A stretch of 64,000 bases of DNA from the NCBI RefSeq assembly GCF_000143415.4, contig NW_003314357.1, forward strand, positions 190,967 to 254,966. The letters are read 5' to 3'. Source of the DNA: Selaginella moellendorffii (lineage: Eukaryota > Plantae > Lycopodiophyta). The position numbers were made by a program, and so were the translations under genes. The notes below the pieces were generated by a model, which worked only from the letters and a program-made list of their open reading frames with translations, did no database searches and was not told where the DNA came from. Position 1 is the stretch's first letter, and each line of letters opens with the position of its first letter. Positions 25,001-59,668 of the stretch are shown here, one piece after another.

Positions 25001-26492
25001 CCGCAGTCTTTCGCTTTTTCTTTCGCTTCTCGTCACGCTTTAGCTTGCGTACGAGAGTCTCCAATAGGGCATTGGTCTGCGCCAATTGTCCTTCTAGCCT
25101 TGGAGCCTCGGACGACCGAACCTCACCACCGGACTCCTGTTTGGAAGTTTCCTCACTGGAGTCCTCCTCATGCATGGATTCCTCATCCATAGCCTCTTGT
25201 TCAACCGGAGGCTCCAACTCTAGTGGAGGTTCCGTCTCCACCTGGGTTTGCTTATGCCCTGCCTTTGCCATCTCCCAGCAATTCACCTCTATCTTTCGCT
25301 AGAACTGAGGAAAAGGCTCCGATACCAAATTGTAAGCCACAAATTTTTCCTTTCCGATTTGCCAGCTTACCTTGTCTATCCGACCAACACTGCCTTGGCT
25401 TGTGCTAAGTTCCCTCGCCAAGGTTCTCGCCTATGGTACCAGCTCCTACTTGGTTCTACTTGGTTTCAACTACTCACTGCACGAACAACGGAGTGTTAGC
25501 CATCCATCTATGGATTCCCAAATCTCTCCTAATTCCCCTCCCCGGGTTAGACTGGACTTAAGGTTCGGCTACACTCCCCGCAGGCACAAGTAGCCAAGCA
25601 CATCAAGCCTCCAGGTTCCTAACACCCCTTGGTACAACAAGACTTGATCATAGGACCCTCTAAATCCCAAGCCTTGGGTGCAGCACTTGCTTCGGGACGT
25701 CGGGGCGAAACACTGTGGCCTAACAGCCCGGTATGGGTACCTCTACCCCCCCCCCCCCCCCCACTTCCATCCCGAAGGGAAGGCCCAAGCCCCTAGGAAG
25801 GGTGAGGACCAATGAGTCACAAGGTACTCAAGTGGGGCACCACTCCACAAGAGCCGAGAGCACCGCAGTTGGTTTCCCTTTCGGGAGTGGGAGCTGCTCT
25901 TGAGCACTTCCCTGGGTGGCCCCTCCGGCACCACCCAAGCCCATGCTCACTCCCACCCAAGGCCCCTCGGCCCCAGTCTCAACCTCAAGTCAGTTTGGAA
26001 GCACCACTGGAGAGTTCCTTCAAGACTGGTTCCTGGACCTCACTATCCCTACTATACTTTTGGAACCCCCTGCAGCCCCCCCCCCCCCCCCCTGGGAGAT
26101 GCATGCTTTGGGCTTTCACCCCTTGAGCTGTATTAGTATTTGGACTTAGTCTCAGAGTCGATCTCGGACCTAACTTCGGACTCGGTCTCGGACTCGATTT
26201 CGAACTCAATCTTGGACCCGATCTCGGACTCGACTTCAGACTTGACCTCGGACTCGGTCTCGGACCCGATTTGGATCTCAGACTCCGTCTCGAACTCGGT
26301 CTTGAACTCAGTCTCGAACTCGGTCTCCGATTCGGTCTCGGACTCGATTCCGGACTCTATCTCGGACTCGATCTCAGAGTCAGTCTTGGAGTCGATCTTC
26401 GACTTGGTCCTATCCGATGAACTCTTTGTCATTTCGGTCATGCTTTCGGGGATCCTTTAGCCTACGACACCTCGGGGAGTCGGTTCCTTACA
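19027..26492 (-). mobile_element. Full-length Ty3/gypsy chromovirus (element B), decayed
   Basis: LTRs 19027-20206 and 25331-26492 (TGTAAG..CTTACA). 5-bp TSD GCACC (19022-19026 / 26493-26497). tRNA-Met PBS tggtatcggagc just inside the 5' LTR; PPT at 20207-20225. Confidence 0.95.
20640..25286 (-). pseudogene. gag-pol of element B (gag with CCHC knuckle, protease, RT, RNase H, integrase, chromodomain), interrupted by stops and frameshifts
   Basis: CYNCGEAGHFSRDC; LIDTGAS; YIDD; ETDASD; integrase HHCC zinc motif, MDFITGLP and TDGQTER; chromodomain EYEVEAIL..FHVKWKGFPHCEATWEPEENL at ~20650-20815. Confidence 0.93.
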
Positions 26493-27522
26493 GCACCCAC
26501 TTGATTTTCCACTCCCAACTTACATAACCACCCTTGGTTATGCTCTTTGATTCCCATGGTTTGGTTCTATCCCTTTACTACTTGCTTTTGGCTTCACACA
26601 TTTCCTTCAGTTATTCACCTCCAAACTAAGAGGATAGCTTTGCACTTTCTACCATGCCTTAGTAAGTATTCTTGAGGATGAACCTACCTGACAGTCTAGG
26701 GAGTGGTTTCTCAATCTAGGTATGCTCACCTTATAATCCCACACACCAGGATTAACGTTGCTACATATGGGCCTTTATATGCCCATCACTAGCCTTGCCA
26801 AAATTCCATTTTTGGCTTTATCCGATTCGGATAGATGGACTTCTTCTGTCTTTGCAACCTTAGACATTTGGATAGCATTTTCTATCCATCATTCGCTAGG
26901 GACTTAGTCCCTTGGGCCTTATCTATTGCCTTCACGACATCAAACACCACCTCCGGGTGTTCTAAAGTGTTTGGGTGTCCCAATGATGGCCTCTTTGACA
27001 ATGACCATTCCCCTTTTTAACATTGACTTACTATATTGCAACATAAACAATTTATCCCCTATAAGGGTATATTTAACTTACATGTTGAATTTGGTCTTCA
27101 CAGGTATTTTGTTTTGGAGCAAACACTCTTTCCAGTAAAGTCCTTATCTTTTTATTGCTATCTATTTTGTAGGTACCACATTGATCCACATGTTGTAGCT
27201 CTACCACCTTTTCTGGGACATTTCCAACTTCTTGAGGATGTTCATTTGCTCTAGAGCAGCAAGCTTCCTTTGGTGTGTTATTTCTTTGAGGGCTGCAATG
27301 GATCCATTTTACCTCATGTACCAAAAAAAGCATTCCACCTAAGAGTGACATTGATTTTGCATTTCAAACTAAACTATGTGAGCTTCGATGGAGTATGCAG
27401 AAAAGTTGGACAGTGCTGGAGAGGGAATTGATTCTTCCTCAAGATCATTATGCCATCCCTGGTTGATCAGTTTCTCCTAATAATGTTAAGACTAATAATG
27501 TTAGATGGATTTATCTAGTTTC

Positions 27523-27642
27523 TAGTTTAATACATTTAAATTTTCTATATTATTATAAGAAAGTTTTGTTAAATTTGATAACATTCTTTGATACCATCAC
27601 ACTATGCTATAAGGGATACATGTTTGGCATCATCATATTAGA
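27523..27642 (+). repeat. Left inverted repeat of the Fic cassette (partner 31506-31619; copy-2 arms 54437-54556 and 58413-58526)
   Basis: tagtttaatac..ttttctatattatta..aagaaagttttgttaaatttgataacattctttgata..tgctataag..acatgtt..atattaga matches the reverse complement of 31506-31619. Confidence 0.85.
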
Positions 27643-27879
27643 AAAATCCCCTCCTAAGACGTCCCTCAGGCTCTGGCCTTTTCTCCTGAGCATTTGCAAT
27701 GAGCTGCAAGCAATTAACATTTCTAAATATATAGTGAGTAGTATATAGTTTTATATATACAACATGACAAGGGGATCACGAGCCGAATATTCTTTGCGCA
27801 CCAAGTCCCGTTACGCGTTCGATTCCTGCGGGTGTCCCTTTCTGGGGTTTAATTTCTCTCTCTTGTTCTTGTTCGGGGT

Positions 27880-28375
27880 GGATGAGGATCGCTGGAGGCG
27901 AGAATGTGAAGCTCTTCGATGTCGCCAGGGTTGCGCTGGTGGAATCACGCGAGTAAGATCTGCCTGCATTGCGCGACGATATGTCGTTGTTTTCCTTTCC
28001 TTCCAGAGATCGTCAAGCTTCTAGGATCTGTGCGGCAGGCATCCTCGAGACGTTTCGTTTAGCTCAAAGTCGTGGAGAGATCGTCGTTGGAATCTGGGGC
28101 ATGCAAAGCTCCAGGGATGATCACGCAAAGACGAGCACCTCCTTCGATCAGGTAAAGCTTTCCTCCCTTTGTTCCTGGTCACGTAGTGAGCTTTTGCCAT
28201 GCTTCCTCATAGAGTTTTTGTTCGGCCGAGCAGAAAGCTTGACGATGGATCGGTGCATCTAGTACTGGAGGCAGTCCAAAGGTATGTTTGGGTCGCTCGC
28301 TTTCTTCATTGACACGCGGCCGAGGAAGGCAGGTGGTCTTTCCAGGAAAAAATAGAGCTGGAAAGCGAGCTCGAG
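27880..28375 (+). pseudogene. Spliced gene fragment of unknown identity, convergent with the Fic-A 3' end
   Basis: Series of gtaag/gtaaag/gtatg donors and pyrimidine-rich ag acceptors spaced like the short introns elsewhere in the window. No consistent long reading frame recovered. Confidence 0.3.
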
Positions 28376-28410
28376 CAACCTCTCGAGGGCGAGAGGTAAG
28401 TATGAGGTCG

Positions 28411-29331
28411 CTACAACTTGAGGCCCTGCCACGACTCGAGGGCCACAAAGAACCTCTGCCAACCGAAGTAGACCCCCTCTATGATGAGAGCAGTCAGGTC
28501 CCTGGGCTCGTGGTCATCCTCGCGAGCACTCTCGAAGCACTTGAGGTAGACATCCCGGTCTACAAACTCGTGCTGGCGGCCAGCGCCAGCAGCGAACAAG
28601 ACATTGGGGAACACAGCCACGCTGCGAAGCAAGTAGGCCAGCATCATCCTCCCGCATCGCCCATTCCCATCCACAAACGGATGGATGCACTCAAACTTGT
28701 AGAAGAAGTCCGAGGCCAGCACCAGGAGCTGCTCCACCGTCTTGCAGCTCCTTGTCGTCGCCTCCTCCTCAAAGAGCCGCTCCACATCCGCGTTAGTCTT
28801 GCTCACCAACTTGGACAACTTGGGCCGGATTGCCCAGGCATCCGCGTAGAAGTGCTGCCTTCCGCTGCTCGTGATCGTCATTGCAACCTCGCTGCCGGAA
28901 CGAAACAAGCCTGCGATCTCCGGCCTGCTCGGCTCCATAAGAAGCTCGTGTGACTGCCTGAGCTTGTAGTTGTTGACGCTGGGAGCCTCCTCGGCCTTCT
29001 CCTCCTGGAGCCACCATGCGTTGAATGCTCGGGACAGGCAGCGGACTTGTTCCAATCTCTCGTCTGGAGCCACCACTTCGTGGAGCTGCTCCAGGGCGTG
29101 GAGTGTTTGGTCCCGGGTATCAAAGCCTTCCAGCTCCAGCTTGTTCACCTGGAAGAGGAAGTCGGCCATAGCGTCGCGCTGCCCGTACACGTCCAGCGCC
29201 CATGCTTTGGCATCGCCGTCCAGGGCCTGGAACCTCTTCACGTACCCACAAATGGCGTCCACCATGCTGCTCGTCGCCGGGGCTCCGTCGCCATCGCACC
29301 TCCAGAAGGGCCTCTCCGCGTATCGCCCCAT
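28411..29331 (-). CDS. Fic/Fido-domain protein (Fic-A), intronless, 306 aa
   Basis: Canonical motif HPFVDGNGRCGR; upstream Fic elements LRQSHELLME..AGLFR; N-terminal FLFQVNKLELEG resembles the inhibitory helix. TATA-like TATAAAA ~35-41 bp upstream of the ATG (29366-29372). Confidence 0.92.
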   Translation of the reverse strand: MGRYAERPFWRCDGDGAPATSSMVDAICGYVKRFQALDGDAKAWALDVYGQRDAMADFLFQVNKLELEGFDTRDQTLHALEQLHEVVAPDERLEQVRCLSRAFNAWWLQEEKAEEAPSVNNYKLRQSHELLMEPSRPEIAGLFRSGSEVAMTITSSGRQHFYADAWAIRPKLSKLVSKTNADVERLFEEEATTRSCKTVEQLLVLASDFFYKFECIHPFVDGNGRCGRMMLAYLLRSVAVFPNVLFAAGAGRQHEFVDRDVYLKCFESAREDDHEPRDLTALIIEGVYFGWQRFFVALESWQGLKL

Positions 29332-29828
29332 CTATATGCCCTAGCCTCAACCCAGAAGGGCCCCCTTTTATACAGCCAAGGTTTGAAAAGGGGTACATTT
29401 GAATTTCCCGGGCTTTGACACGCGGCACGCGATAATTGGCTGTCGGCGCAAGCTCATTCTTCAGGGCTTGGCGAGGCGACGGCGTGAGCGCGATGGCGAT
29501 GGCGATGGCGATGGCGCTGGCGGGGTGAACGATTGATCCAGCGCCAGCGCAGGGTAGGCGCTTCGGTCGATCACAACGAAATTTCATAGTTTCTTGCTCT
29601 AGATCGCTCCCTGTTAGCTGGATCGGGCCGGCTCAGCGTCAGCGATCGATTTCTCCTCTCGCCCCGGGTGTGTAGCGCTCAGCTACCTTTTCTTGCTGCA
29701 GAGCTAGGATCCAAGAGCAACTCGCGGCCTGTGTAGGTATGGAGATCGATATTGCCATATTTCCAACGATTCCATGAAATGCACCTTCCTAGGGTCACAG
29801 GACTTGTGAATTTCTCTCGGCTGGTATC

Positions 29829-30656
29829 ATGGATGGGCGGCGCGCGGCTCTGAATCTCGTCCGAAGTGCTGGTATGCATTTCGATCTCTCAACCTCGTAT
29901 AGTGTTTGCTTATATTGCAGTGAGGAAACCAAGGGGAAAAGCTGGCAAGGAGAAGGAGCCAGAACCACTGCTTACACCGTCCAACCACGCAGGCTTCTGG
30001 TATGTCTTATGTCGCAGCTCTCTCCACGTACTTATCCAATCTACTCCAGGTTTGAGGCCTTCTGGGACACCCAAGCTATCAAAGTTGCTACGTCCCATGG
30101 CTTGGACGATCCTGCTCGATCCGCAGGGCTCTTGAGAGGTCTTGCCGTCATCAGGTCCTGGCCGGAGAGCTCACCCATCACGACCCTGCAGCTGTTACAA
30201 CTGCACGAAGCTTTACAGCTGACACCGGTCTCGGCATTCCGCAGTTATGGTGCCATGTCCTCTGCTGGAAAGAGTTACGCACATCCCCGAGACATCCAGG
30301 TCAAGATGCGGAAGTTCCTGGACCGTCTCAATGCAAGCATCGCGGAGCACAGCAAGAGCAAGATGAGCATCGCCAAATGGGCCTCCACGGTCGCAAGGCT
30401 CATCATCGACTTCGAGAAGATCCATCCGTTTGAAGATGGTAATGGGCGTGTTGGACGCCTGCTTGCGCTGCACCTGCTGCGTCGCATTTCAGCCTTCCCA
30501 GCGGCCTTCTTCACTGCAGCTGAGCACGGATCCCGGGACAGGTTCATCACTGCTTTCGAGGAGGATGACGAAGACGAGCTGGCAAAGATTCTACTCGGCA
30601 GCCTCCAGGGAACAGACGCTGCGTGGAGAGAGTTCCTTAAATCGAAGCTCCAGTGA
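29829..30656 (+). CDS. Fic/Fido-domain protein (Fic-B): 275 aa unspliced, ~242 aa if two short introns (29872-29920, 30000-30049) are removed
   Basis: Canonical motif HPFEDGNGRVGR; LLQLHEAL..SAFR; the GT-AG introns of 49 and 50 bp keep the frame when both are spliced. Confidence 0.9.
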   Translation: MDGRRAALNLVRSAGMHFDLSTSYSVCLYCSEETKGKSWQGEGARTTAYTVQPRRLLVCLMSQLSPRTYPIYSRFEAFWDTQAIKVATSHGLDDPARSAGLLRGLAVIRSWPESSPITTLQLLQLHEALQLTPVSAFRSYGAMSSAGKSYAHPRDIQVKMRKFLDRLNASIAEHSKSKMSIAKWASTVARLIIDFEKIHPFEDGNGRVGRLLALHLLRRISAFPAAFFTAAEHGSRDRFITAFEEDDEDELAKILLGSLQGTDAAWREFLKSKLQ

Positions 30657-31505
30657 TCTCGAACAGGAAGACAGGGGAAAGTTTGTCCTGGTATTTTTTT
30701 TCTTTTCTACTTCTTTACATGACTACGCTAGAACTTCTGCATTGTCCAATAAAAAGCTGTGAACCAAGACAACTCAAAAACTTTCCTTGAGCACAACTAT
30801 CCATGGCATGCTCCAGTGAAAACTAGCAATGGATGCTTTCGTGAGGACAGATCCCCTTCGTTTACAGCTTTGCTATAAGATGGGGCTTACCTGACTAACG
30901 TGTCATGCATGAATATTTGCTGGACGAGCTCGTCTATGGAATCGCTCTCGCCTTTTCGCTGCCTGTCTGACAGTGGCTTACCAGCCTTGCCTTGCTCACC
31001 ACTATCTCCGGAAATCCAAGTCTAAACGGGCCGCAGGTGACACATCTCAAACTTGGCTCCCTGCTCTTGAGGTTAGCCTTTATCGACTTACTAATGTTCG
31101 ATCGACCTTCGCTCCAAGCCACTGTTCTCGCATCAGACCATCCAACATAGATAGAAAAGTCCTCCCATGCTCATCTCATGGCCATCTTGGAAACCTGGAA
31201 GTTGGCTCGGGCTTTTGGAGCCACCACGGAAGCTGTAAACTCTGGGTTGGGCTGGGGGCTACGTAAGCGTTGGTGACCAGCACCAACACTTAGCACATGG
31301 TAAGCAGCACCAACCTTTTTGCTTGGAAACCACAGGCACAAACCCCGGTGGTGACGATCGTCCGGACTGGAATTGCCCTCCTTTCAATTGCGTAGTACTC
31401 CATCACGTAGAGAAGGGGGTAGTGATGGCTTATATCAATTGTTTTGTCCCTGAAGAAAAGACATAGACTCGATGATTGACGGGCATGGATTTCTTGGCAA
31501 GGAGC

Positions 31506-31619
31506 TCTAATATATCCTAACATGTGTCTCTTATAGCATATCAAAGAATGTTATCAAATTTAACAAAACTTTCTTAGACAGAAAATTAATAATATAGAAA
31601 ATATAATTGTATTAAACTA
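31506..31619 (-). repeat. Right inverted repeat of the Fic cassette
   Basis: Reverse complement of 27523-27642. A third related copy, in the left-arm orientation, lies at ~31757-31855. Confidence 0.85.
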
Positions 31620-33959
31620 TAATTTTTAAATTAACATCCAGTGAAACTGAAACTCGTATACTCATATGTTAAATGTAAAAGCCAATACTTATTCTAGGCA
31701 CATGCTTAAGATCTAACAGCTGAGAACTAATTATAATTGCCTTAATACAATAGATTGCTCTATATTATTATTCTTATCTAATATTGTTTTTTTTTAAATT
31801 CGATAACATTCTTTGATACTATCACGTTATGCTATAAAAGACATATGTTAAAATATATTTATAAGAAAACTAAATTTTATTTTTTATAGTAATTGCAATA
31901 GATGTTGTTTATTTATGTTTTATAATTTTTATATTAAGATATTTAACATATCACTTTAAAAAAATTAGTTTGTTTTTATTTGTTTTCATTTGAGGTGATT
32001 GGTATATATCTTTGATAAGTCCATTACAAATTATGATTATAATGTGGTGTATCAACTTACTTATAAATAAATAAATCTAACGTATGCTATGAGTGTCAAA
32101 TGTCTTTAATTTTGTTAAACATTTCTTTGCTATTAATTATGGGTCATATTTTATTTTTATAAATTATTTTCTAATTAGAACTTATTCTTTTAGTTATAAA
32201 GTTTAAAATTCTTAGATTTTGTACGCTCTAAGTTTTAACTATAAAAACAACTATATGATCTAGGAATGTTTCATGTTCTTACAACTTGGCTTGACTTGTG
32301 ATTTATTAATAATATTATTAAATAAAGGTAGATGTTGGACACCAATTTTTTAAAAAGTATTTTAAATAAACTGTTAAAAATTTTATATTTAATATTAATA
32401 TTTTAAATGGAGCTGGATTCTCTTGCTAGTGCTTATATATTTAAATGAATAAGCTGGTTTCATAATGTCAAATGCTAGGAACTAAGCATATGCCAAAATC
32501 TACTGGTTGAGATTAACAAGCCTTAAAAGAATTTGAAATGTCTTTTAGAGCAGGGAGGAAACTGTGGCAGTATCTAAGAAGAGCTATGAATATTCTTCAA
32601 CACCTGAATTATGAAGTTTGAGATGTCTGTGTCACTCGTCTCACTGATGGCCAGTTGGGAGTCATGATCACTGCTGCTATTACCTCAGGTACCTTTATCA
32701 AATTGGAAATGGTGCTGCAGAGGAAGACCACCAAGAAAGGAAATGTTACAGCAGCCACCAAGGACTAGTGATTCATCATTAAAGAAATGGATACCATAAA
32801 AATTTAAGGATATCTATGTAGGGTCATGCTACTTTGCTCTTGAGTGTGCAGGAGTGGAAAACAGGAAAAAAAAACCACACTTAAGACTTTATATTTAGGA
32901 TTTTCTCTCAGGCTTTTGGAGTCAGGAAATTACATGAGTGCACAGAATAATTAGTGACCACGCATGTAGGATATAAAAGGGGGAACTTAGGATATCCTTC
33001 CCATCCCACTTTGTACTTTGTTTTACACATAATTGCATCTCTACTTATTCCACTCATTGTGCAAAGCCTAATCGGCAACCTTCCTTTAGGATATCCAAAG
33101 TCATATTTCTTTTTACTTGTTTGTGTTTATAAGTTAAATCACAACATAAGAAACCCCATTGGCCCCCTTAAAGTAGTCTTTTGATAAACTATAAAAGTAT
33201 ATTATATATAATGTATTCTCATCTCGGTCATATACTATACATATTTGAATTACAAACAAACACTACTTTTTAGTATTAAATAATTATGAAATATTTACTA
33301 AAATATAAATAAATAAGAAGCTCAATTTCCATCTTAGAAATCTGCATTACTAGAGCAGAATAGCCTGATCTTTCCAATTGATTCACTCGTGTCGTGGAAT
33401 GCATTGCTGGTGGGGTATGTGCAAGTAGGGAGTGTGGAGCACATCAATGCATTGTTTGCCACCTTGCCCAAAGCCGACATTGTCACTGGAGCATAGCCAT
33501 GGCCCAACACAAACTCCCTAAACCACACTAGTGATTCATGCTAGCTGCTGCACACCATGGTGTGCCACGGTCTACAACCCAACACTTGCAGCTTCCTGGC
33601 CCTCATAGAGAAGCAACATTAGCAAAGAAGACAATCTCTGAAGTGGCACTTACATCAAAGCTTCTAGTGGCTGTCGCATCAAGCTCACAATCTTGAGCTT
33701 TCATTTGCTCTTGCAATGACTTGTTTCCATCTTGAGGCCTTTCACCAGCTTCTTCATCTAGACAAACAATCACTTTGCTTAGAAAAGAAAAATAAGAGAA
33801 AAGAGAAAAGGGAAACCTCAACCCTTGACATGGTAAGTGTCACCCTGTGCATCTAGCCAATGCATGTTACTATCCAAATTGTGAGGATCAACACCAAAAA
33901 ACCCACTCGCAAACTCCTCCAGTCTGCCACTCCTTGATAAACGCATTTGTGGTTTTTAT

Positions 33960-35005
33960 TTCTATGTATTCTTTTGCCGATGGATCGCTGGGCTTGGGAA
34001 CAGCTCTCTTTCACCAGGTGTCACGTAAATATTAGCTTTTCTGAGGTATTAAAGTTTCTGGCGCAGCACTACGAAGACGATCCAAACAATTTTGGCCTCT
34101 GTGTGGCCGATCTGAGTTGGCTTTCCGAGTCGGTGAGTGCTGCTTCTGAGTTGAAATTACAGGTACTTACATGATCCTTGATCCAATGCTTAATCATGAA
34201 CTTCAGTTAGCAGTACATGCAATTGGTGATGCAGCATACGATGATGTACTTGGAATTTACACTGACGCTATTTCTAAACATCCTCGTCAAGGACATCGAT
34301 TGAGAGTAATGATGAACAAATCTACGTTTGTATCACTGAACTTGTGGGATTGCAGGTAGAGCATGCACAGCACCTTTCACCTGGAGCACACCTCAAATTT
34401 GGGAAGTTCTCCATATCTGTGTCGATGCAAGTAAGCAGATGAGTGCATTTTGCCTCCATTGCAAAACCCTATATTTTTGCACAGCCAGAGAAACTTCTAG
34501 ATGATGCTTACTACGCCATGAAGAAACTTGGTGAGAAGCACTCACGCAGATCTTATAACCTCCGGTCCCTCGTCGGAAACGGTAGTGTGGTTGCTCTAGG
34601 ATCCAACTGGCCTGTAAGCCTGTCAAATACTTTTTCTTCGGCATTACGTGAATGGTTTGTCTCAAGGTGGTAGCAGTGAATCCAGTTGGAGGGATCCGCA
34701 CAGCTGTGGAGAGAACACCTTCAGGCTGGAGTCATCCCTGGATTCCCGAGGAAAGGATTTCTGCATAGGACGCAGTGGTAGGGTAAGAGAAAACAGATGA
34801 GAAGCTGAAATGCAGTCCTTGTTTTTGGATTCACACGTACACATCCTCGGCTGTGTATGCAGCTGCATTGGAGGATTTGGTTGGGTCGCTGATGCCAGGA
34901 AAGTTTGCCGACTTTGTGGTGTTGCCCGAGTCTCCTTTTGGACAGGGCACGGGCATTTTTCCTCGAGTGGTTACGTTCGTTGGTGGAAATATTGCCTTCC
35001 TTTCT
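33960..35005 (+). pseudogene. LAF3/YtcJ-like amidohydrolase, 3' exons only
   Basis: Spliced exons give FADGSLG..TALF / YEDDPNNFGL / LAVHAIGDAA..HRLR / VEHAQH..SMQ / PE.LLDDA..ALGSNWP / VNPVGGIRTAV..WIPEERISA* / YTSSAVYAA..GSLMPGKFADFVVL. Premature stop, GSDWP changed to GSNWP, 5' half absent. Confidence 0.88.
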
Positions 35006-35092
35006 TAAGGCGTTATTCCATAATTATTTGGTCTTTTAAATATAGCATATTTGCGAGAAGATTGGTGAGGAGAAAGCAGCCAGAATCATCAT

Positions 35093-35253
35093 CGTGCTAC
35101 ACAGCTTTACATCCAAGCCTCAAGGACGTCACCAGGCAATACTTTGTGGATTCCAACAAATCCAACTGTAGCACTTATGGCAGAGAACCCGAGCTCGCTC
35201 CCAAGCTATGGACCTTCTCCCAGGAGCTTATAGACAAGCATTCTCCGTCCTAA
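35093..35253 (+). pseudogene. Last-exon fragment of a short-chain dehydrogenase/reductase (TIC32/retinol-dehydrogenase-like)
   Basis: CYTALHPSLKDVTRQYFVDSN..ELAPKLWTFSQELI matches the typical SDR C-terminus (GAATTCYxALHP..GxYFxDxN..LAxKLWxFS). Confidence 0.8.
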
Positions 35254-35387
35254 AGGTAAAAGGTTGATGGTGCTAGAGACCGAGAGAGCAACAAGGCCTT
35301 CTATGCGTTTGAGCACATAGAGGTAGCTTTGCGTTTGAGATATAGAAAGTATGGATCGATTGTTTGATGATTATTTGATCCTCACAG

Positions 35388-35558
35388 GCTGGAGGAGTTT
35401 GCCTCAACGATTTGCCAAGCATGCGCATTGGTAGGCAGCCATATGGTGGGATCAAAGACTCTGGAATCCAACAAGAGGGTGTCAAGTACGCAATGGACAA
35501 CATGCTCGAAACCAAAGTTTTAGTCATGCGCAATGTAGGCAACACGTCTTACTTTTGA
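35388..35558 (+). pseudogene. Aldehyde dehydrogenase (ALDH21-like) terminal exon fragment
   Basis: cag|AGGVCLNDLPSMRIGRQPYGGIKDSGIQQEGVKYAMDNMLETKVLVMRNVG; ALDH C-terminal PYGGxKxSG motif. The subfamily call is from memory of moss ALDH21. Confidence 0.8.
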
Positions 35559-35619
35559 TCAAGCTCGAGCTCGAGCTTTTGTACAGTCTATCCACAAATT
35601 ATTGCCGAGTTGTCCTCGT

Positions 35620-36286
35620 ACGCGTAAAGACGCCAGCTTGGAGACCGTAATGCGTGTTGTTAGCTTCCTTCACGGCTTCCTTGAAATCACCACCGTTTTA
35701 GTTTAGAGAAAAAAAAAAAAGGAAGTAAAGAAGAACTTCGGGAGCTAAGAAACTTTAAGAGCTTACTTGTATGAGTAGAGAAGGATCACGAGACCAAAAA
35801 TCTCTCCCTTCCTTGCATCCGTGTCAAAGGGAGTGTCTTCCAGGATCATTGGCTCCATGAAAGCTCCCCTATGCTTACCACCAACTAGAAGTTTGGCGGC
35901 AGCCTTCACTGCCTTGTTCACGCCCTTCTCCACTGTAGCTGCTGACGACTCAGATATCATGGGCCCAATGGACGTGTCGTCTTGGGAAGGATCTCCACCT
36001 TTGAGTTTCTTAACAGCAGTGATCAATGCGTCCTTCACCTACACAACCAGCACCAGATATGTTAGATCAAGGCTCAATTTGAGAACAAAGAATGTGATAG
36101 AATTTAAAGACAAGTGTCGGATACCTCCTTGTAAAGGCCACCTCTCACATAAAGACGCTGCATGTGAATGCACGACTGGCCGCTTTGATAGAATCCCCTG
36201 TGGACCAACCTAGCGATTGTACCTTCCAAGTCTGGGACAAGATCTTCCACTATGCATGGAGCATTGCCTCCCAGCTCCATAACCAC
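35620..36286 (-). pseudogene. Aldehyde dehydrogenase internal three-exon fragment, opposite strand to its terminal exon
   Basis: MELGGNAP (catalytic Glu), FYQSGQSCI (catalytic Cys), EIFG, ANNTHYGLQAGVFT. Exons 36286-36125, 36038-35767 and ~35692-35620. Confidence 0.88.
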
Positions 36287-37212
36287 CTGTAAGAGGAATC
36301 AAAGAAGTTGAAGAAAGCGAAGCTCCATCTGAAGGAAGATATAATAAAATAACATTAAATTTTAGTATCTTTAAAACTAAGAATAGTTTGCTAAATCAAT
36401 TTTAGTCTTCCAAAACATCCATCGAAAATATGTTTCTTTTATAATAATTTTCTTAAAAAGAGATTTATATTTTATATTTTATGTAGATAATGTCATTCTA
36501 TAGTATTTAATAAAGCCAAAAATTTCATAGAGTTCGAATGAAGCAGTGGTTCTTGCAATATAAAATATATTTTAATTATTCATGTATATAGTAGTACGTT
36601 AAATCTAATTTTATAAGTTTAAGTTTTATGTAATTTAAAATCTAGGTTTGAACAATCTAATCTATAATACAAGAGAATGATGAAGTAGAGTGGATAAAAT
36701 GAAAAAAAATAACACTTTACTCAAAAATGATATGTTTTATACAACAAAGTATATTTTTTAGAAATGTAAATACAAAATAAATTTACTTATATATATATAA
36801 AATGTTATTATATTACTGTAAATATATTATCATATATAAAATATGTTAATATTATTATCTACATAGTAATGTGATAGATCTATGTTTTTAATTAATAATT
36901 TATTATATAATTTAAATCTTTTTATAACTGGTATTTATTTTTAAAAATAATTTAGACTCATATGGTCTCACTTCTTGAAGTTGTCCATGCTTAAAATAAT
37001 TTTATGGAGAAATTTTATAAGTAATTTTATGTTTTCCATACAATTATTTATAAACTTTAAAAGAACTACTTAACAAAGTACCTATTGCTGGAGAAGTAGA
37101 AGGTACAAAGCTGATCAATCTAGCCAATGCTTACTTGATGGGAACTTTAAACTGTGGGTTCCTTATTACGAGGAGCTTGCTGAGCTTATCGTTGTCCATC
37201 ATTGTGGATTTT

Positions 37213-50554: not shown

Positions 50555-51710
50555 ATAGTAGACACAATAAAAAGAATACTTCAACATTAAAATAAAATAA
50601 GTACTGACTAAAATGATATATTTCATAACTTAAAATAGAAAAGTTGAATAGCTCTAGCTATTCTAATTTGTAAATTAATTTTTGTTTTCAAATAAACTTA
50701 TGATACTTATTACACATTCATCAATGAATCTAATCACATTGAGTTGTATAATATCTAAATTATATTATGTTTAGCTATGTATGTTATCAATATGAATATG
50801 TTAAAAATTGATTACAACTCTTTGAAATTACTAAATCATCAGAAATAAACACGATGCTCCCAATGTAGTTGGGACTTTTGCTAGTACTCCCTTATTTAAA
50901 AGTGCTATTAGCATATGGCATTTTTTATTCCATTCTAAGAATATTGAATTTTACTTAAGGATGCTCCTAATCAGATAGATTAGATTTGTTACTCTCCAAA
51001 TGGAGGGTTACAATTCTTACATGTGGCAAAGAGGTGGTGACGATTGAAATCACCTCTTGGGTTGTAATCTTTTAGGGTAGATTGTGGGGGGCAGATTGTG
51101 AAAGTGCTTTTATTCTTGAGGAATAGTGCAATGTTCTTGTTCTATTCATGATCTATGGCTATAGCATATTTAGTATAAATGCTGGCAGGGACAGAGCACC
51201 AGTGTTCCTGGAAAGGGTGATGGAGTGACGTGGGAGGTGAAGCAACTGGCAGAGGAGGAGCTACAGGGATGTTGGTGGAGTTGCTGTTGGCAAAGGTAGC
51301 AAAGAGTCATCGCTAGAGGAGGTGAGGTGTGGCCTAATGAAGGACGTGGGCAGAATGAACTATGGCTCCAAGCTTGTTATGCAGTCACCAACATCCCGTT
51401 CTTTCCAGATTTTTTGTAGCCAACAGCAAAGGCAAGATCAATGAAGAAAGCCCATGCAAGCCTCTGTAATGGACGTGAGAATTATTTTATTGGATGCCTC
51501 TGGTGGAACAAAAGAGAGTCTCTGCCAAAGGAGGAGCTTTCCCGATCCCTTCTCTCTCTCTCTCTCTTTCACACACACACACACACACCTCGATATCTTC
51601 TATTCTTACAGCACTCCCTATTTTCCTTTCTCTATGCTGATGGAGTGTCAGTTGCTCATATTATCAGGGATTTATACAGCTTAATGGCTGTGTCATTCCA
51701 TTGTCTGCAG

Positions 51711-51960
51711 TGATTGGAGCTTTGGAAGCTTGGTGAAGTCTTTGACATCCAAGTTAAGGCTCTCGCAAGTTTCACATGAACTTAAAACATTTCCTTGTTT
51801 TTCAGTCGGAGGAAGTCTTGCAAGTGTTGGCACTGGATTAAAGCAAGAGACCACTGTTGCTACTTTGGTCACTGCTCATGCTGTGAAGGATCTCCCAATT
51901 TCCGTGCAAACTCCCTCACACACCCTCACTCCTCTTGCCCAGAATCCCCTCAAAATCCTT
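51711..51960 (+). pseudogene. Fragment resembling the N-terminus of plant BSD-domain-containing proteins
   Basis: cag|DWSFGSLVKSLTSK / SEEVLQ..VGTGLKQETTV..AHAVKDLPIS resembles the WSFGGLIKTL..KSESV..FGSGLKKET..RAVKDLP segment recalled for plant BSD proteins. Frameshifted and isolated. Confidence 0.55.
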
Positions 51961-54900
51961 CAGCTTCCCGGCCGTTGCAAACATATGCTACTGCAGCAAT
52001 CTGTGGTGAGATTCAAGCCGTGGTGTGCAAAGCACCACTCAGGTAAAATCGAAAAGCTTTCTACCAAAATGATTTTTGATGGACTGTGACTGCTCATGAA
52101 TTACTTGAAGCCAGGGTTTTATTCAAAGCTACTTTTTGGCATTTTGAATAATTATGACTGTTTAATTAAGCATAACCCTTGAACCTTTAACCCTGCAAGA
52201 GAAAATATTTGATGGCGATTTGATGCATATTCAGGTTTTCAGGGCTATTACTGACATACATGGATTAAGGGTTTTCATTCAAGCAACTTGCGGGTTCTTT
52301 GAATTCCTTTAATTTTTAGGCTTCTTAAGGAAATTGTCGGCCCAGCCACTGCCGGCAACAGACTTTTCAAATGACACTAATTTGTATTAAAGCTTAACAT
52401 TTTCTCTGCCAAAAAGTCATTTCAAATGGCTTTTTGGCAGCCGAATAAAACACTGCTTAAAGCTGTTGGCCAGAAAATAGAAGATTTTGAAAGCTCGGGT
52501 TGATGAAGGTAAGCACTGCCTTGGTAAGAAGGCCTTCTTCATATATTCTATGTATAACAAGAACAAGCATGAGGATTGGAGCAATGTTCAATTCTTTGGA
52601 CGGGGTTGTACCTTGGCTTGTTTATCTTATCCACGAATTTGTTTTTAATTAAAAAATTGAGCTTCATCTTGATGGTGAGCATGTCAAGAAAGCTTTAATA
52701 GCATGCTTTATAAGTTTTTTGAGAAGAAAATACTAACAAATTGTACCTTGTACTTGGTGAAGAGAAATTTTGGTTATATTTGCAGCAAACCAGAAGAGAA
52801 AGATAGTGGCAAACACCTTTTCCACATTTACTTCCTCTTGCTCACTGTACAGACAGTGTACAGCCTCGATTGGTGATGGCAAATCCAACATGGGACGAAT
52901 TGGCTGTATCCCATCAAAGGTTGTAGCATTTTCATGCCATCACTTGGATGGCTCTTATCAACCATGGGAATTGATAGCTTAATCATAAGAAATTATGGAA
53001 TGTTATTCACATGTTGAATTTGGTCTTCACAGGTATTTTGTTTTGGAGCAAACACTCTTTCCAGTAAAGTCCTTATCTTTTTATTGCTATCTATTTTGTA
53101 GGTACCACATTGATCCACATGTTGTAGCTCTACCACCTTTTCTGGGACATTTCCAACTTCTTGAGGATGTTCATTTGCTCTAGAGCAGCAAGCTTCCTTT
53201 GGTGTGTTATTTCTTTGAGGGCTGGAATGGATCCATTTTACCTCATGTACCAAAAAAAGCATTCCACCTAAGACTGACATTGATTTTGCATTTCAAACTA
53301 AACTATGTGAGCTTCGATGGAGTATGCAGAAAAGTTGGACAGTGCTGGAGAGGGAATTGATTCTTCCTCAAGATCATTATGCCATCCCTGGTTGATCAGT
53401 TTCTCCTTTGCTGACCATTCTTTGGGGGAGTCTGCTGGAGTAGCTTCTGATGAAGATGGAGATAAGGGATGCTCAAGATCATCAGTGCCACGGCTGCCAA
53501 TCACATTTGTTGTTAGTTTTAAACTCTAGAGATGGAACATACTAAAAGATAATGACATTCTCTGTGTTTATGAGCACAAATAGGTATGCTTTAGTAAAGG
53601 TTTCTCACAAAGCTCACTAGTTTCCTTTTTCCTATTGTTTGTCACACATGGAGTCAAGCCAATGGCCCAGTGCCAATATCTTGGTTCACTCCTCAAGCAG
53701 GCCATGATGACAGCAAAGCACATTATTCGCATAGCCAACTCTATCCATTTAAATGTAGAAATGCTCTAATGTTTATTTGGACAGGCACCCTTATCCTTGG
53801 ATGAGTGCATTGCAAGTTCATGGCTTTGGAGACTATATCAAGATCTTTTGACAATCTTGTAGCCTTTCAAGGTGCGGATCACACAATGCAATGTGATTCT
53901 AATGCTCTTTTGCTTGCATTTTCTCTTTTCTTTCAGAAGAATCTCTATTGTTTCTATGATTAATCATAAAGAACTTAGTAGAATAAGAGGTTAAGATCTA
54001 TATTTTCAATAACATTGAGACTTCTTGCTTATGTTGGTAGCCATGAGTGTTTTCTTGAATGCACAGTAATCACATGTCTTAAAAACTTTATATATATATA
54101 TATAGGATTTTATAAGCAATCACAATTGTTATACTTCTATGAATATATCAATCAGAAACATAAGAATATAATGTTATTAAACATTCATTTTTTACTTTGA
54201 TTTTAAATCCTTTGATTGGGATACCTGTCTCCAACTATAAATGGTATAGCTTTTTTTAAAGAAATCTTAATATTGCAACTGAAAAACTATTAACCACAGT
54301 GAAATAATAAAATATACAAATAATAATTTTAGAAATCAATAAGTATATTTTTAAAAGTATTTTAAATTTTATCAATACATATAGATAATGATTCAATAAC
54401 TGAGACTAATAATGTTAGATGGATTTATCTAGTTTCTAGTTTAATACATTTAAATTTTCTATATTATTATAAGAAAGTTTTGTTAAATTTGATAACATTC
54501 TTTGATACCATCACACTATGCTATAAGGGATACATGTTTGGCATCATCATATTAGAAAAATCCCCTCCTAAGACGTCCCTCAGGCTCTGGCCTTTTCTCC
54601 TGAGCATTTGCAATGAGCTGCAAGCAATTAACATTTCTAAATATATAGTGAGTAGTATATAGTTTTATATATACAACATGACAAGGGGATCACGAGCCGA
54701 ATATTCTTTGCGCACCAAGTCCCGTTACGCGTTCGATTCCTGCGGGTGTCCCTTTCTGGGGTTTAATTTCTCTCTCTTGTTCTTGTTCGGGGTGGATGAG
54801 GATCGCTGGAGGCGAGAATGTGAAGCTCTTCGATGTCGCCAGGGTTGCGCTGGTGGAATCACGCGAGTAAGATCTGCCTGCATTGCGCGACGATATGTCG

Positions 54901-55324
54901 TTGTTTTCCTTTCCTTCCAGAGATCGTCAAGCTTCTAGGATCTGTGCGGCAGGCATCCTCGAGACGTTTCGTTTAGCTCAAAGTCGTGGAGAGATCGTCG
55001 TTGGAATCTGGGGCATGCAAAGCTCCAGGGATGATCACGCAAAGACGAGCACCTCCTTCGATCAGGTAAAGCTTTCCTCCCTTTGTTCCTGGTCACGTAG
55101 TGAGCTTTTGCCATGCTTCCTCATAGAGTTTTTGTTCGGCCGAGCAGAAAGCTTGACGATGGATCGGTGCATCTAGTACTGGAGGCAGTCCAAAGGTATG
55201 TTTGGGTCGCTCGCTTTCTTCATTGACACGCGGCCGAGGAAGGCAGGTGGTCTTTCCAGGAAAAAATAGAGCTGGAAAGCGAGCTCGAGCAACCTCTCGA
55301 GGGCGAGAGGTAAGTATGAGGTCG

Positions 55325-56238
55325 CTACAACTTGAGGCCCTGCCACGACTCGAGGGCCACAAAGAACCTCTGCCAACCGAAGTAGACCCCCTCTATGATG
55401 AGAGCAGTCAGGTCCCTGGGCTCGTGGTCATCCTCGCGAGCACTCTCGAAGCACTTGAGGCCCGGTCTACAAACTCGTGCTGGCGGCCAGCGCCAGCAGC
55501 GAACAAGACATTGGGGAACACAGCCACGCTGCGAAGCAAGTAGGCCAGCATCATCCTCCCGCATCGCCCATTCCCATCCACAAACGGATGGATGCACTCA
55601 AACTTGTAGAAGAAGTCCGAGGCCAGCACCAGGAGCTGCTCCACCGTCTTGCAGCTCCTTGTCGTCGCCTCCTCCTCAAAGAGCCGCTCCACATCCGCGT
55701 TAGTCTTGCTCACCAACTTGGACAACTTGGGCCGGATTGCCCAGGCATCCGCGTAGAAGTGCTGCCTTCCGCTGCTCGTGATCGTCATTGCAACCTCGCT
55801 GCCGGAACGAAACAAGCCTGCGATCTCCGGCCTGCTCGGCTCCATAAGAAGCTCGTGTGACTGCCTGAGCTTGTAGTTGTTGACGCTGGGAGCCTCCTCG
55901 GCCTTCTCCTCCTGGAGCCACCATGCGTTGAATGCTCGGGACAGGCAGCGGACTTGTTCCAATCTCTCGTCTGGAGCCACCACTTCGTGGAGCTGCTCCA
56001 GGGCGTGGAGTGTTTGGTCCCGGGTATCAAAGCCTTCCAGCTCCAGCTTGTTCACCTGGAAGAGGAAGTCGGCCATAGCGTCGCGCTGCCCGTACACGTC
56101 CAGCGCCCATGCTTTGGCATCGCCGTCCAGGGCCTGGAACCTCTTCACGTACCCACAAATGGCGTCCACCATGCTGCTCGTCGCCGGGGCTCCGTCGCCA
56201 TCGCACCTCCAGAAGGGCCTCTCCGCGTATCGCCCCAT
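55325..56238 (-). pseudogene. Fic-A copy 2, frameshifted after the catalytic motif
   Basis: Identical to 28411-29331 except for loss of TAGACAT (28547-28553) at 55460/55461. The C-terminal helices are replaced by a short missense tail (276 aa). Confidence 0.88.
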
Positions 56239-56735
56239 CTATATGCCCTAGCCTCAACCCAGAAGGGCCCCCTTTTATACAGCCAAGGTTTGAAAAGGGG
56301 TACATTTGAATTTCCCGGGCTTTGACACGCGGCACGCGATAATTGGCTGTCGGCGCAAGCTCATTCTTCAGGGCTTGGCGAGGCGACGGCGTGAGCGCGA
56401 TGGCGATGGCGATGGCGATGGCGCTGGCGGGGTGAACGATTGATCCAGCGCCAGCGCAGGGTAGGCGCTTCGGTCGATCACAACGAAATTTCATAGTTTC
56501 TTGCTCTAGATCGCTCCCTGTTAGCTGGATCGGGCCGGCTCAGCGTCAGCGATCGATTTCTCCTCTCGCCCCGGGTGTGTAGCGCTCAGCTACCTTTTCT
56601 TGCTGCAGAGCTAGGATCCAAGAGCAACTCGCGGCCTGTGTAGGTATGGAGATCGATATTGCCATATTTCCAACGATTCCATGAAATGCACCTTCCTAGG
56701 GTCACAGGACTTGTGAATTTCTCTCGGCTGGTATC

Positions 56736-57563
56736 ATGGATGGGCGGCGCGCGGCTCTGAATCTCGTCCGAAGTGCTGGTATGCATTTCGATCTCTCAAC
56801 CTCGTATAGTGTTTGCTTATATTGCAGTGAGGAAACCAAGGGGAAAAGCTGGCAAGGAGAAGGAGCCAGAACCACTGCTTACACCGTCCAACCACGCAGG
56901 CTTCTGGTATGTCTTATGTCGCAGCTCTCTCCACGTACTTATCCAATCTACTCCAGGTTTGAGGCCTTCTGGGACACCCAAGCTATCAAAGTTGCTACGT
57001 CCCATGGCTTGGACGATCCTGCTCGATCCGCAGGGCTCTTGAGAGGTCTTGCCGTCATCAGGTCCTGGCCGGAGAGCTCACCCATCACGACCCTGCAGCT
57101 GTTACAACTGCACGAAGCTTTACAGCTGACACCGGTCTCGGCATTCCGCAGTTATGGTGCCATGTCCTCTGCTGGAAAGAGTTACGCACATCCCCGAGAC
57201 ATCCAGGTCAAGATGCGGAAGTTCCTGGACCGTCTCAATGCAAGCATCGCGGAGCACAGCAAGAGCAAGATGAGCATCGCCAAATGGGCCTCCACGGTCG
57301 CAAGGCTCATCATCGACTTCGAGAAGATCCATCCGTTTGAAGATGGTAATGGGCGTGTTGGACGCCTGCTTGCGCTGCACCTGCTGCGTCGCATTTCAGC
57401 CTTCCCAGCGGCCTTCTTCACTGCAGCTGAGCACGGATCCCGGGACAGGTTCATCACTGCTTTCGAGGAGGATGACGAAGACGAGCTGGCAAAGATTCTA
57501 CTCGGCAGCCTCCAGGGAACAGACGCTGCATGGAGAGAGTTCCTTAAATCGAAGCTCCAGTGA
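56736..57563 (+). CDS. Fic-B copy 2, intact
   Basis: Same translation as 29829-30656; one synonymous difference noticed near 57530. Confidence 0.9.
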   Translation: MDGRRAALNLVRSAGMHFDLSTSYSVCLYCSEETKGKSWQGEGARTTAYTVQPRRLLVCLMSQLSPRTYPIYSRFEAFWDTQAIKVATSHGLDDPARSAGLLRGLAVIRSWPESSPITTLQLLQLHEALQLTPVSAFRSYGAMSSAGKSYAHPRDIQVKMRKFLDRLNASIAEHSKSKMSIAKWASTVARLIIDFEKIHPFEDGNGRVGRLLALHLLRRISAFPAAFFTAAEHGSRDRFITAFEEDDEDELAKILLGSLQGTDAAWREFLKSKLQ

Positions 57564-59218
57564 TCTCGAACAGGAAGACAGGGGAAAGTTTGTCCTGGTA
57601 TTTTTTTTCTTTTCTACTTCTTTACATGACTACGCTAGAACTTCTGCATTGTCCAATAAAAAGCTGTGAACCAAGACAACTCAAAAACTTTCCTTGAGCA
57701 CAACTATCCATGGCATGCTCCAGTGAAAACTAGCAATGGATGCTTTCGTGAGGACAGATCCCCTTCGTTTACAGCTTTGCTATAAGATGGGGCTTACCTG
57801 ACTAACGTGTCATGCATGAATATTTGCTGGACGAGCTCGTCTATGGAATCGCTCTCGCCTTTTCGCTGCCTGTCTGACAGTGGCTTACCAGCCTTGCCTT
57901 GCTCACCACTATCTCCGGAAATCCAAGTCTAAACGGGCCGCAGGTGACACATCTCAAACTTGGCTCCCTGCTCTTGAGGTTAGCCTTTATCGACTTACTA
58001 ATGTTCGATCGACCTTCGCTCCAAGCCACTGTTCTCGCATCAGACCATCCAACATAGATAGAAAAGTCCTCCCATGCTCATCTCATGGCCATCTTGGAAA
58101 CCTGGAAGTTGGCTCGGGCTTTTGGAGCCACCACGGAAGCTGTAAACTCTGGGTTGGGCTGGGGGCTACGTAAGCGTTGGTGACCAGCACCAACACTTAG
58201 CACATGGTAAGCAGCACCAACCTTTTTGCTTGGAAACCACAGGCACAAACCCCGGTGGTGACGATCGTCCGGACTGGAATTGCCCTCCTTTCAATTGCGT
58301 AGTACTCCATCACGTAGAGAAGGGGGTAGTGATGGCTTATATCAATTGTTTTGTCCCTGAAGAAAAGACATAGACTCGATGATTGACGGGCATGGATTTC
58401 TTGGCAAGGAGCTCTAATATATCCTAACATGTGTCTCTTATAGCATATCAAAGAATGTTATCAAATTTAACAAAACTTTCTTAGACAGAAAATTAATAAT
58501 ATAGAAACTATAATTGTATTAAACTATAATTTTTAAATTAACATCCAGTGAAACTGAAACTCATATACTCATATGTTAAATGTAAAAGCCAATACTTATT
58601 CTAGGCACATGCTTAAGATCTAACAGCTGAAAACTAATTATAATTGCCTTAATACAATAGATTGCTCTATATTATTATTCTTATCTAATATTGTTTTTTT
58701 TTGCTATAAAAGAAATATGTTAAAATATATTTATAAGAAAACTAAATTTTATTTTTTATAGTAATTGCAATAGATGTTGTTGATTTATGTTTTATAATTT
58801 TTATATTAAGATATTTAACATATCACTTTAAAAAATTTAGTGTGTTTTTATTTGTTTTCATTTGAGGTGATTGGTATATATCTTTGATAAGTCCATTACA
58901 AATTATGATTATAATGTGGTGTATCAACTTACTTATAAATAAATAAATCTAACGTATGCTATGAGTGTCAAATGTCTTTAATTTTGTTAAACATTTCTTT
59001 GCTATTAATTATGGGTCATATTTTATTTTTATAAATTATTTTCTAATTAGAACTTATTCTTTTAGATATAAAGTTTAAAATTCTTAGATTTTGTACGCTC
59101 TAAGTTTTAACTATAAAAACAACTATATGATCTAGGAATGTTTCATGTTCTTACAACTTGGCTTGACTCGTGATTTATTAATAATATTATTAAGTACAGG
59201 TAGATGTTGGACACCAAA

Positions 59219-59624: not shown

Positions 59625-59668
<44 letters not shown>

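Follow-up and report, generated by a model that had tools for sequence, protein, structure and literature searches.

The genome of the lycophyte Selaginella moellendorffii contains, within a window of 64 kb (the whole stretch of DNA analysed here), two genes of the Fic family arranged head to head on opposite strands. Fic is mainly a bacterial family, and the question raised by the locus is whether these two genes, here called Fic-A and Fic-B, belong to the plant at all and, if so, whether they work together. The initial annotation took them for a co-regulated two-component AMPylation module. The window is Selaginella nuclear DNA, and our analysis makes it probable that Fic-A is a working Fic protein of a plant family, that Fic-B is a divergent one, and that their pairing is a local accident spread by segmental duplication. 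Coordinates refer to the 64-kb window throughout, unless another locus is named. The features that define the pair are as follows.

28411..29331, minus strand: Fic-A gene, an uninterrupted open reading frame (ORF) of 306 amino acids (aa) encoding a class-II-like Fic protein of a lycophyte/fern clade.
29829..30656, plus strand: Fic-B gene, an ORF of 275 aa with the Fic domain at about residues 71-275; an orphan, highly divergent Fic.
28648..28683, minus strand: catalytic loop of Fic-A, H217-R228, HPFVDGNGRCGR, with columns invariant in the alignment.
30423..30458, plus strand: catalytic loop of Fic-B, H199-R210, HPFEDGNGRVGR, with columns invariant in the alignment.
29332..29828, no strand: divergent intergenic region of 497 bp, containing a (GCGATG)n microsatellite at 29475-29528 and exon 1 of the Fic-B 5' untranslated region (5'UTR; at least 29529-29736).

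The head-to-head pair of motif-intact Fic genes described by the initial annotation was recovered with both ORFs exactly in place and their start codons separated by 497 bp. With the Pfam profile for Fic (PF02661, Fic/DOC; gathering cut-off 24 bits), which had been proposed as a check, both proteins scored above the cut-off (Fic-A 49.4 bits, Fic-B 52.2 bits). Each carries a complete HPFxDGNGRxxR motif, an instance of the general pattern HxFx(D/E)GNGRxxR, and across dozens of aligned Fic proteins no variation was seen at its H, P, G, R and R positions. The two proteins are as dissimilar as annotated, being 30% identical over 183 aa. Fic-A and Fic-B are genuine, motif-intact Fic genes of a land-plant nuclear genome.

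A bacterial contaminant, or a gene acquired horizontally in very recent times, would be in keeping with the mainly bacterial membership of the family and with the nearest shapes in the ESM Atlas, which are bacterial. The best database matches of both proteins are S. moellendorffii gene models, and the SELMODRAFT_427919/427920 locus on the 694-kb scaffold GL377661.1 is 100% identical at the protein level to the window loci. Against a foreign origin, the Fic-bearing scaffolds are large (0.7-2.7 Mb), with plant genes and plant retrotransposons on either side; the rest of the window consists mostly of Ty3/gypsy-type retrotransposon remains (reverse transcriptase, RNase H, integrase, gag and protease). 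Splicing was found in the UTR and at nearby introns 51-82 nt long, the GC content at third codon positions (GC3) is host-like for Fic-A (0.80; host histone gene 0.825) and lower for Fic-B (0.61), homologues are present in ferns, and the top bacterial protein match reaches at most about 65 bits. Contamination, which the initial annotation had named as a way for its reading to fail, is excluded by scaffold context, introns, the GC3 of Fic-A and the fern homologues, and to contamination and very recent transfer together we assign almost no probability. An ancient transfer into an ancestor of vascular or green plants may have taken place. The nearest non-plant relatives are green-algal and chytrid Fic proteins and many database or metagenome sequences, and the tree has no resolution in that region.

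Fic-A has full-length relatives of 36-37% identity at a genomic locus of the fern Adiantum nelumboides and in two transcript-sized contig sets from public runs (fern-like). In Selaginella, the family has at least three members, namely Fic-A, its paralogue A3 (GL377580.1) and the fern-like Fic-C (GL377613.1); the last was added by profile search as SELMODRAFT_444864, whose genomic ORF is uninterrupted and encodes 356 aa with the loop HPFKDGNGRIGR. In a maximum-likelihood (ML) tree of 60 sequences, FICD sequences not among them, the Selaginella and fern proteins form a single clade (support 100/100), within which Fic-C clusters with the ferns (95/82) and Fic-A and A3 are sister to them. The family alignment has 85 invariant columns, including FLFQVNKxE, the catalytic loop, FPNVL and PRDLTALIxEGVYxGWxRFF. 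A3 has an open frame and 88% protein identity to Fic-A. Between the two, 25 synonymous changes fall on 200 sites and 35 non-synonymous changes on 712 (Fisher p=5e-4), corresponding to a ratio of non-synonymous to synonymous substitution rates (dN/dS) of 0.37 at a synonymous distance (dS) of 0.137; the ratio lies below the value of about 1 that the initial annotation had set as speaking against function. The members of the Fic-A family are conserved plant genes under purifying selection.

At the Adiantum nelumboides locus (L004), two extra partial matches to Fic-A residues 46-98 were observed at positions 9546-9945, just upstream of the late-starting fern gene model; either part of the gene is duplicated in tandem there, or the start of the fern gene is wrongly placed in its annotation.

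The regulatory layout of the two proteins was compared at the position of the inhibitory helix known from studied Fic enzymes.

29131..29148, minus strand: inhibitory-helix motif of Fic-A, V62-N-K-L-E66-L67, with the Glu kept (from alignments).
30069..30086, plus strand: counterpart of the inhibitory motif in Fic-B, T81-Q-A-I-K85-V86, with Lys replacing Glu (MAFFT alignment with 24 presumably bacterial class II Fic proteins).

E66 of Fic-A hardly varies among the aligned proteins; it falls on the Glu of SNAIE(G/N) in 24 presumably bacterial class II Fic proteins (MAFFT) and, in a PDB profile alignment, with E35 of the C. difficile Fic protein CdFic (PDB 4x2e), the residue mutated in PDB entries 4x2c (S31A/E35A) and 4x2d. 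In class II Fic proteins, including FICD, the inhibitory Glu blocks AMPylation and is also required for de-AMPylation (PMC6826200, PMC8373988); further work on this residue (Engel et al., 2012) is cited as referred to in PMC4454073. Because E66 matches this studied Glu, Fic-A would be auto-inhibited for AMPylation and may de-AMPylate, by analogy with these enzymes. Of the class II motif (S/T)xxxE(G/N), Fic-A has the Glu with V and L or K as flanks, and Fic-B lacks the Glu. The Glu/Lys asymmetry between Fic-A and Fic-B at this motif is real.

The AlphaFold2 (AF2) model of Fic-A has a predicted local distance difference test score (pLDDT) of 90.2 and a predicted template modelling score (pTM) of 0.90. 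Foldseek gave a probability of 1.00 to many solved Fic structures, with BT_2513, human FICD, C. elegans Fic-1, SoFic and CdFic as the best solved matches of Fic-A (template modelling score, TM, ~0.66); its matches have the N-terminal inhibitory helix in all cases except NmFic, a weaker match. The models of both proteins display the all-helical Fic fold with its beta-hairpin flap, present as short strand pairs before the core helices.

The closest likeness in sequence and fold is to class II bacterial Fic proteins (CdFic, 4x2e; Shewanella SoFic, 3zcn; Bacteroides BT_2513, 3cuc), which, like Fic-A, combine an inhibitory helix with Glu and a downstream HPFxDGNGRxxR loop in one polypeptide (TM 0.66, Foldseek E 1e-9, PDB profile E 7e-9). 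The plant proteins differ from them in several respects: identity is only 15-20%, the inhibitory motif has V for S/T and L or K for G/N, the C-terminal motif PRDLTALIIEGVYxGWxRFF and an 'FPNVLF' segment past the loop are particular to the plant proteins, and the helix-turn-helix domains frequent in the bacterial neighbours are absent from them (Pfam). None of the NCBIfam bacterial subfamily models came near its cut-off for Fic-A or Fic-B, and feature and shape searches of the ESM Atlas returned generic Fic clusters only.

Metazoan FICD/HYPE/Fic-1 proteins are likewise eukaryotic Fic proteins, are among the top fold matches of both Fic-A and Fic-B, and share the intramolecular inhibitory Glu that in FICD switches between AMPylation and de-AMPylation. 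The FICD/HYPE layout, a type II membrane anchor followed by tetratricopeptide (TPR) repeats, is not that of Fic-A or Fic-B: Pfam finds the Fic domain only and no TPR in either, neither has an obvious membrane anchor on inspection, and the N-terminus of Fic-A is hydrophilic. Identity to FICD is only 17%. In the tree, from which FICD is absent, the company of the plant clade consists of database or metagenome, algal and chytrid sequences. Fic-A would be pictured as a functional representative of the plant Fic family common to lycophytes and ferns, a soluble single-domain protein built like a bacterial class II Fic protein or the FICD catalytic domain, with an N-terminal inhibitory helix bearing E66 followed by the canonical HPFxDGNGRxxR loop. 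It would act as an auto-inhibited AMP-transferase and/or de-AMPylase on a target that is probably cytosolic.

Fic-B is an orphan. No close kin emerged from a word-indexed search or from exhaustive HMMER searching of 1.84 billion representatives, which yielded only its own mis-spliced gene model, the sole entry under E=1e-10 with HMMER, and weak generic Fic matches. Outside Selaginella, its top match comes from a green alga, Apatococcus lobatus (Fido protein KAK9844657.1; 53 bits). In the ML tree, Fic-B falls into a group without internal resolution, together with the plant clade, Apatococcus, a Tetraselmis-containing cluster, a chytrid protein and further database sequences, and this group is split at 99/95 from sequences with a SNAIEN-type motif. 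Constraining Fic-B and the plant clade to be together costs 2.35 log-likelihood units and is neither favoured nor rejected by the approximately unbiased (AU) test (p=0.41); Fic-B may or may not be a very divergent old paralogue. The green-algal and other eukaryotic Fido proteins of this broad tree group (A. lobatus, the Tetraselmis astigmatica cluster and the chytrid Borealophlyctis; the 'E2' clade of Khater and Mohanty, 2015) share a '(V/I)xxFPxxxF' segment past the catalytic loop; they differ in being under 30-36% identical, over the core only, and relations within the group lack resolution. Residues 1-70 of Fic-B are predicted to be disordered, and from residue 71 onwards the AF2 pLDDT is about 90. 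Its Foldseek matches include FICD and CdFic, as do those of Fic-A, and the Fic domains of VbhT and Bep proteins. Fic-B is best described, tentatively, as a far more divergent Fic gene found at this locus only, with an intact catalytic loop, Lys85, a disordered N-terminus of 70 residues and weaker codon bias.

Expression was assessed in public sequencing runs, which were judged to be RNA by size and spliced joints, and whose contigs are unstranded. Two spliced features are needed to read these data.

27882..28262, plus strand: small spliced gene, convergent with Fic-A; the Joint Genome Institute (JGI) model has 108 aa and no known domain; GT-AG introns at 27953-28006 (54 nt) and 28152-28233 (82 nt), with joints in contigs of four studies.
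29737..29792, plus strand: Fic-B 5'UTR intron, 56 nt, GT-AG; seen as joint 29733->29790 (cut +3) in a single X1 contig of low depth, splice sites read in the sequence.

RNA-type runs of six studies contained 42-51% of the words of 28300-30800, which is about the share of the Fic-A half. Contigs of four studies are gap-free and colinear over Fic-A from 28231 to 29350-29474 and cross the catalytic-loop region without a joint; abundant contigs match the window with 0 differences from about 27923 to 29350-29474. The contigs derive from RNA, because the plus-strand introns of the small neighbouring gene are removed in the same contigs. The abundance of exact matches indicates that the window copy of Fic-A is transcribed (strand unproven), and not A3 alone; A3 is also expressed, as variant contigs of run X1 bear the substitutions and indels expected of it.

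Fic-B was covered in X1 only among the four runs examined by contig, at a depth of 2.6-4.9. In a search with Fic-B alone, its words were partially present (0.19-0.29) in four runs of a single study and at 0.00 in the RNA-type runs of six other studies. The Fic-B transcript lies on the plus strand, because the GT-AG intron of its 5'UTR is removed. The 5' ends mapped for the Fic-A and Fic-B transcripts are at most about 55 nt apart and flank the microsatellite at 29475-29528, which was skipped as a repeat in contig placement. Of the bidirectional transcription that the initial annotation had proposed to look for, the Fic-A side was thus found in RNA-type contigs of six studies (strand unproven), and the Fic-B side amounts to low-depth fragments from one study. 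Fic-A and Fic-B are not co-expressed in any simple way.

The pair occurs more than once in the window and beyond it.

27080..32345, no strand: duplicated block, copy 1 (self-blastn, 99.5-99.7% identity to 53009-59217).
53009..59217, no strand: duplicated block, copy 2 (self-blastn), with 996 bp extra at 53408-54402.
55328..56238, minus strand: Fic-A of copy 2, out of frame beyond residue 259 because of a length difference of 7 bp (sequence comparison).
56736..57563, plus strand: Fic-B of copy 2, intact, protein identical to copy 1 (sequence comparison).

Copy 3 is inverted and lies about 10 kb past the right window end, and its Fic-B match ends at residue 184. The 15-kb scaffold GL377836.1 has both Fic ORFs open and a left flank that matches 50555-53407, and looks like the other haplotype of copy 2. 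An older copy on GL377609.1 matches the window over 27854-30071 only; a stop interrupts its Fic-A at codon 10, and what survives of its Fic-B amounts to 81 codons, 3 stops among them. About 4-5 kb to the right of copy 1 (32059-37064) are found again, inverted, on the right side of copy 2 (59364-63187), with 94-100% identity. This inverted repeat, together with the inverted third Fic pair past the window, indicates a complex palindromic segmental duplication, as judged from the sequence layout. Recent segmental duplication would have copied the Fic pair at least three times on GL377661.1, and the copies, several of which have one or the other member broken, appear to be in birth-and-death turnover.

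An identity step was observed between 27900-30071 and positions 9219-11393 of the GL377609.1 locus (L002), with about 98% over 27900-29800 (small gene, Fic-A and intergenic region) and 79-83% in the Fic-B remnant; it suggests gene conversion over the Fic-A side, with a tract end near the Fic-B start codon.

How the two genes came to face each other was approached through their solo relatives. A3 is head to head with an alpha/beta-hydrolase gene 282 bp away, with no Fic-B at its locus, and its neighbours are RNA recognition motif (RRM), histone, alpha/beta-hydrolase and jacalin genes. The Fic-C locus has a solo Fic gene with a pentatricopeptide repeat (PPR) gene alongside, and the Adiantum Fic is a solo gene. 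Divergent pairs, whose recurrence in related genomes the initial annotation had proposed to test, were seen, at the loci examined, only as copies of a single locus. Because the older and conserved family members are solo, the pairing would be local and spread by segmental duplication, and the head-to-head layout a local accident of gene order. One further feature bears on its origin.

30919..31153, no strand: fragments of a decayed alpha/beta-hydrolase gene, colinear in blastn/tblastx with positions 8535-9463 of the A3 locus (L003).

As these colinear hydrolase fragments lie just past Fic-B, the cassette would be an old duplicate of a locus in which Fic-A faces the hydrolase gene head to head, with Fic-B now filling the space between Fic-A and the hydrolase remnants. 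Fic-B was either inserted in the window lineage or lost from the A3 locus, and we cannot tell which. The fragments and the small spliced gene at 27882-28262 also mean that the two Fic genes do not stand alone in the window as non-transposon features, and the second, 99.7% identical copy at 55.3-57.6 kb means that the pair is not unique there; both points correct the initial annotation.

A different mode of spread is suggested by an inverted repeat around the cassette.

27520..27627, no strand: left arm of an AT-rich inverted repeat, partner 31516-31622.
31516..31622, no strand: right arm of the inverted repeat, which also pairs with 31742-31859 to give a hairpin of about 345 bp resembling a miniature inverted-repeat transposable element (MITE).

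The arms match each other almost perfectly (100% over 38 nt, 92% over 36 nt) and bracket the GC-rich cassette, as they would if the pair were cargo of a transposase-less terminal-inverted-repeat (TIR) element, Pack-type or MITE-flanked, bounded by the arms of about 105 bp and spread by transposition. The extent of the copies does not follow such boundaries: the duplicated unit (27080-32345 and beyond) overruns the TIR-bounded span, and the homology to the GL377609.1 locus (27854-30071) stops within the cassette and not at the arms. The 38-mer was found nowhere else in the window or in the unrelated loci examined, the right arm doubles as half of the separate MITE-like hairpin, and a target-site duplication is not evident. 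Spread as a TIR-bounded element was rejected on these grounds and is, in our estimate, highly improbable; the copies appear to have arisen by segmental duplication and not by TIR-bounded transposition.

The proposal of a functional two-component module was weighed against the expression and copy data. In such a module, Fic-B would be a constitutive writer or toxin and Fic-A an eraser or antidote, both under a shared bidirectional promoter, and the cassette, possibly a defence locus or a selfish one, would be multiplied whole. It finds a footing in the Glu kept by Fic-A and the Lys of Fic-B, given the role of this Glu in blocking AMPylation and in de-AMPylation by FICD and class II enzymes (PMC6826200, PMC8373988), in transcript 5' ends within about 55 nt on either side of the microsatellite, in at least four copies of the pair as a unit, and in a pair age of at least ~0.14 substitutions per site. 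If it were true, induced Fic-B would AMPylate a host or invader target, constitutive Glu-bearing Fic-A would reverse this or restrain Fic-B, and the amplification of the cassette would reflect the dynamics of defence genes or selfish elements. The claim of co-regulation does not agree with the strongly unequal representation in RNA (Fic-A in six studies, Fic-B as traces in one), with conserved relatives that are solo, or with copies that lose either member, as in copy 2, where a broken Fic-A stands beside an intact Fic-B; nor did the search of the 1.84 billion representatives turn up a gene like Fic-B in another organism. We consider a functional module very unlikely, and the two genes would act independently.

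The resemblance to class I Fic toxin-antitoxin systems (VbhT/VbhA, FicT/FicA, Bep/BiaA) is limited in a similar way. As in these systems, the genes are adjacent, one of them, here Fic-B, lacks its own inhibitory Glu, and Fic-B has fold matches to the Fic domains of VbhT and Bep. The class I antitoxin is small, contributes nothing beyond the inhibitory helix and shares an operon transcript with the toxin, whereas the neighbour here is an entire Fic enzyme (306 aa), encoded on the opposite strand and very differently expressed. No small motif-bearing ORF was identified between or beside Fic-A and Fic-B, and the assignment to class I modules was rejected.

Alternatively, Fic-B, and perhaps the whole cassette, could be a decaying, functionless by-product of duplication, with only the solo genes A3 and Fic-C mattering to the plant. 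The cassette is located in retrotransposon-rich DNA, several copies are broken, and Fic-B is barely expressed, with a GC3 of 0.61 and disorder in its N-terminal 70 residues. On the other side, both frames are open in copy 1 and in the GL377836.1 allele, the abundant contigs with 0 differences show that this very Fic-A copy is transcribed, and Fic-B retains all catalytic residues and a confidently predicted fold despite its extreme divergence. We regard functionless decay as unlikely.

Four observations also sit uneasily with a working Fic-A in accidental company. The residues around its inhibitory Glu are non-canonical, with V for S/T and L or K for G/N. The contigs merge Fic-A with the convergent plus-strand gene, so that the strand of the Fic-A transcript is unproven and antisense read-through is possible. 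The frame of Fic-B is open and every catalytic residue is kept despite less than 30% identity to anything else, which argues for long-term constraint and hence for some function. Finally, the neutral distance between the window and the Fic-B remnant on GL377609.1 is about 0.14, so the pairing is not brand new; its age is suggested to be at least ~0.14 substitutions per site, of the same order as the Fic-A/A3 dS of 0.137. The reading of Fic-A as a working plant Fic protein and of the pairing as a local accident, spread by segmental duplication, is nevertheless the one we hold to be probable.

Some further observations concern the surroundings of the cassette. In the small plus-strand gene, the 82-nt intron is absent from the JGI model and alters the predicted C-terminus, and an alternative 51-nt intron at 28282-28332 was seen in one run. 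Pfam searches with this gene and with the ORFs flanking the cassette gave no domain match. Positions 45043-50554 are occupied by a complete long terminal repeat (LTR) retrotransposon, about 5.5 kb long, whose LTRs of 360 bp are 97.2% identical and which has RNase H/integrase ORFs; it is precisely missing on GL377836.1, which runs from 45042 directly to 50555, and the difference is either a haplotype insertion polymorphism or a mark of a very recent paralogue. Arrays of 12-nt tandem repeats at 19784-20227 and 26106-26477, 6.3 kb apart, are embedded in larger direct repeats (19027-20206 and 25331-26492, 91% identity) and are probably LTR parts of a retrotransposon with gag-pol ORFs in between; similar 12-nt repeats are also found at the GL377609.1 and A3 loci.

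The existing gene models offer a reason why the family has been overlooked. In all five JGI Fic models (427919, 427920, 419851, 411522 and 444864), predicted introns excise the catalytic loop, and none of the five has a Pfam assignment in the database. The genome reads through the loop in frame at the Selaginella Fic loci with mis-spliced models, and because RNA-type contigs show no joint at the loop, the uninterrupted ORFs are the better gene models. The error is systematic in the Selaginella annotation, and the corrected ORFs can serve its re-annotation.

In the papers searched, the Fic domain was not linked to Selaginella, to lycophytes or ferns, or to model bryophytes and algae. The statement of the initial annotation that such Fic enzymes are not a standard part of flowering-plant proteomes nonetheless needs softening if taken for plants at large: 'plant' Fic proteins are already listed in the supplement of Khater and Mohanty (2015; PMC4454073), which places them in a eukaryotic clade with Dictyostelium and fungi. 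By itself, the finding does not amount to a new kind of system.

Studies of Fic-catalysed protein AMPylation have dealt with bacteria and animals. The genes described here indicate that a conserved and transcribed Fic family persists in vascular plants without seeds, that its regulatory architecture would be FICD-like, and that one Selaginella locus has gained a second, extremely divergent Fic gene, which is under amplification. They provide concrete genes with which to ask about reversible AMPylation in plants.

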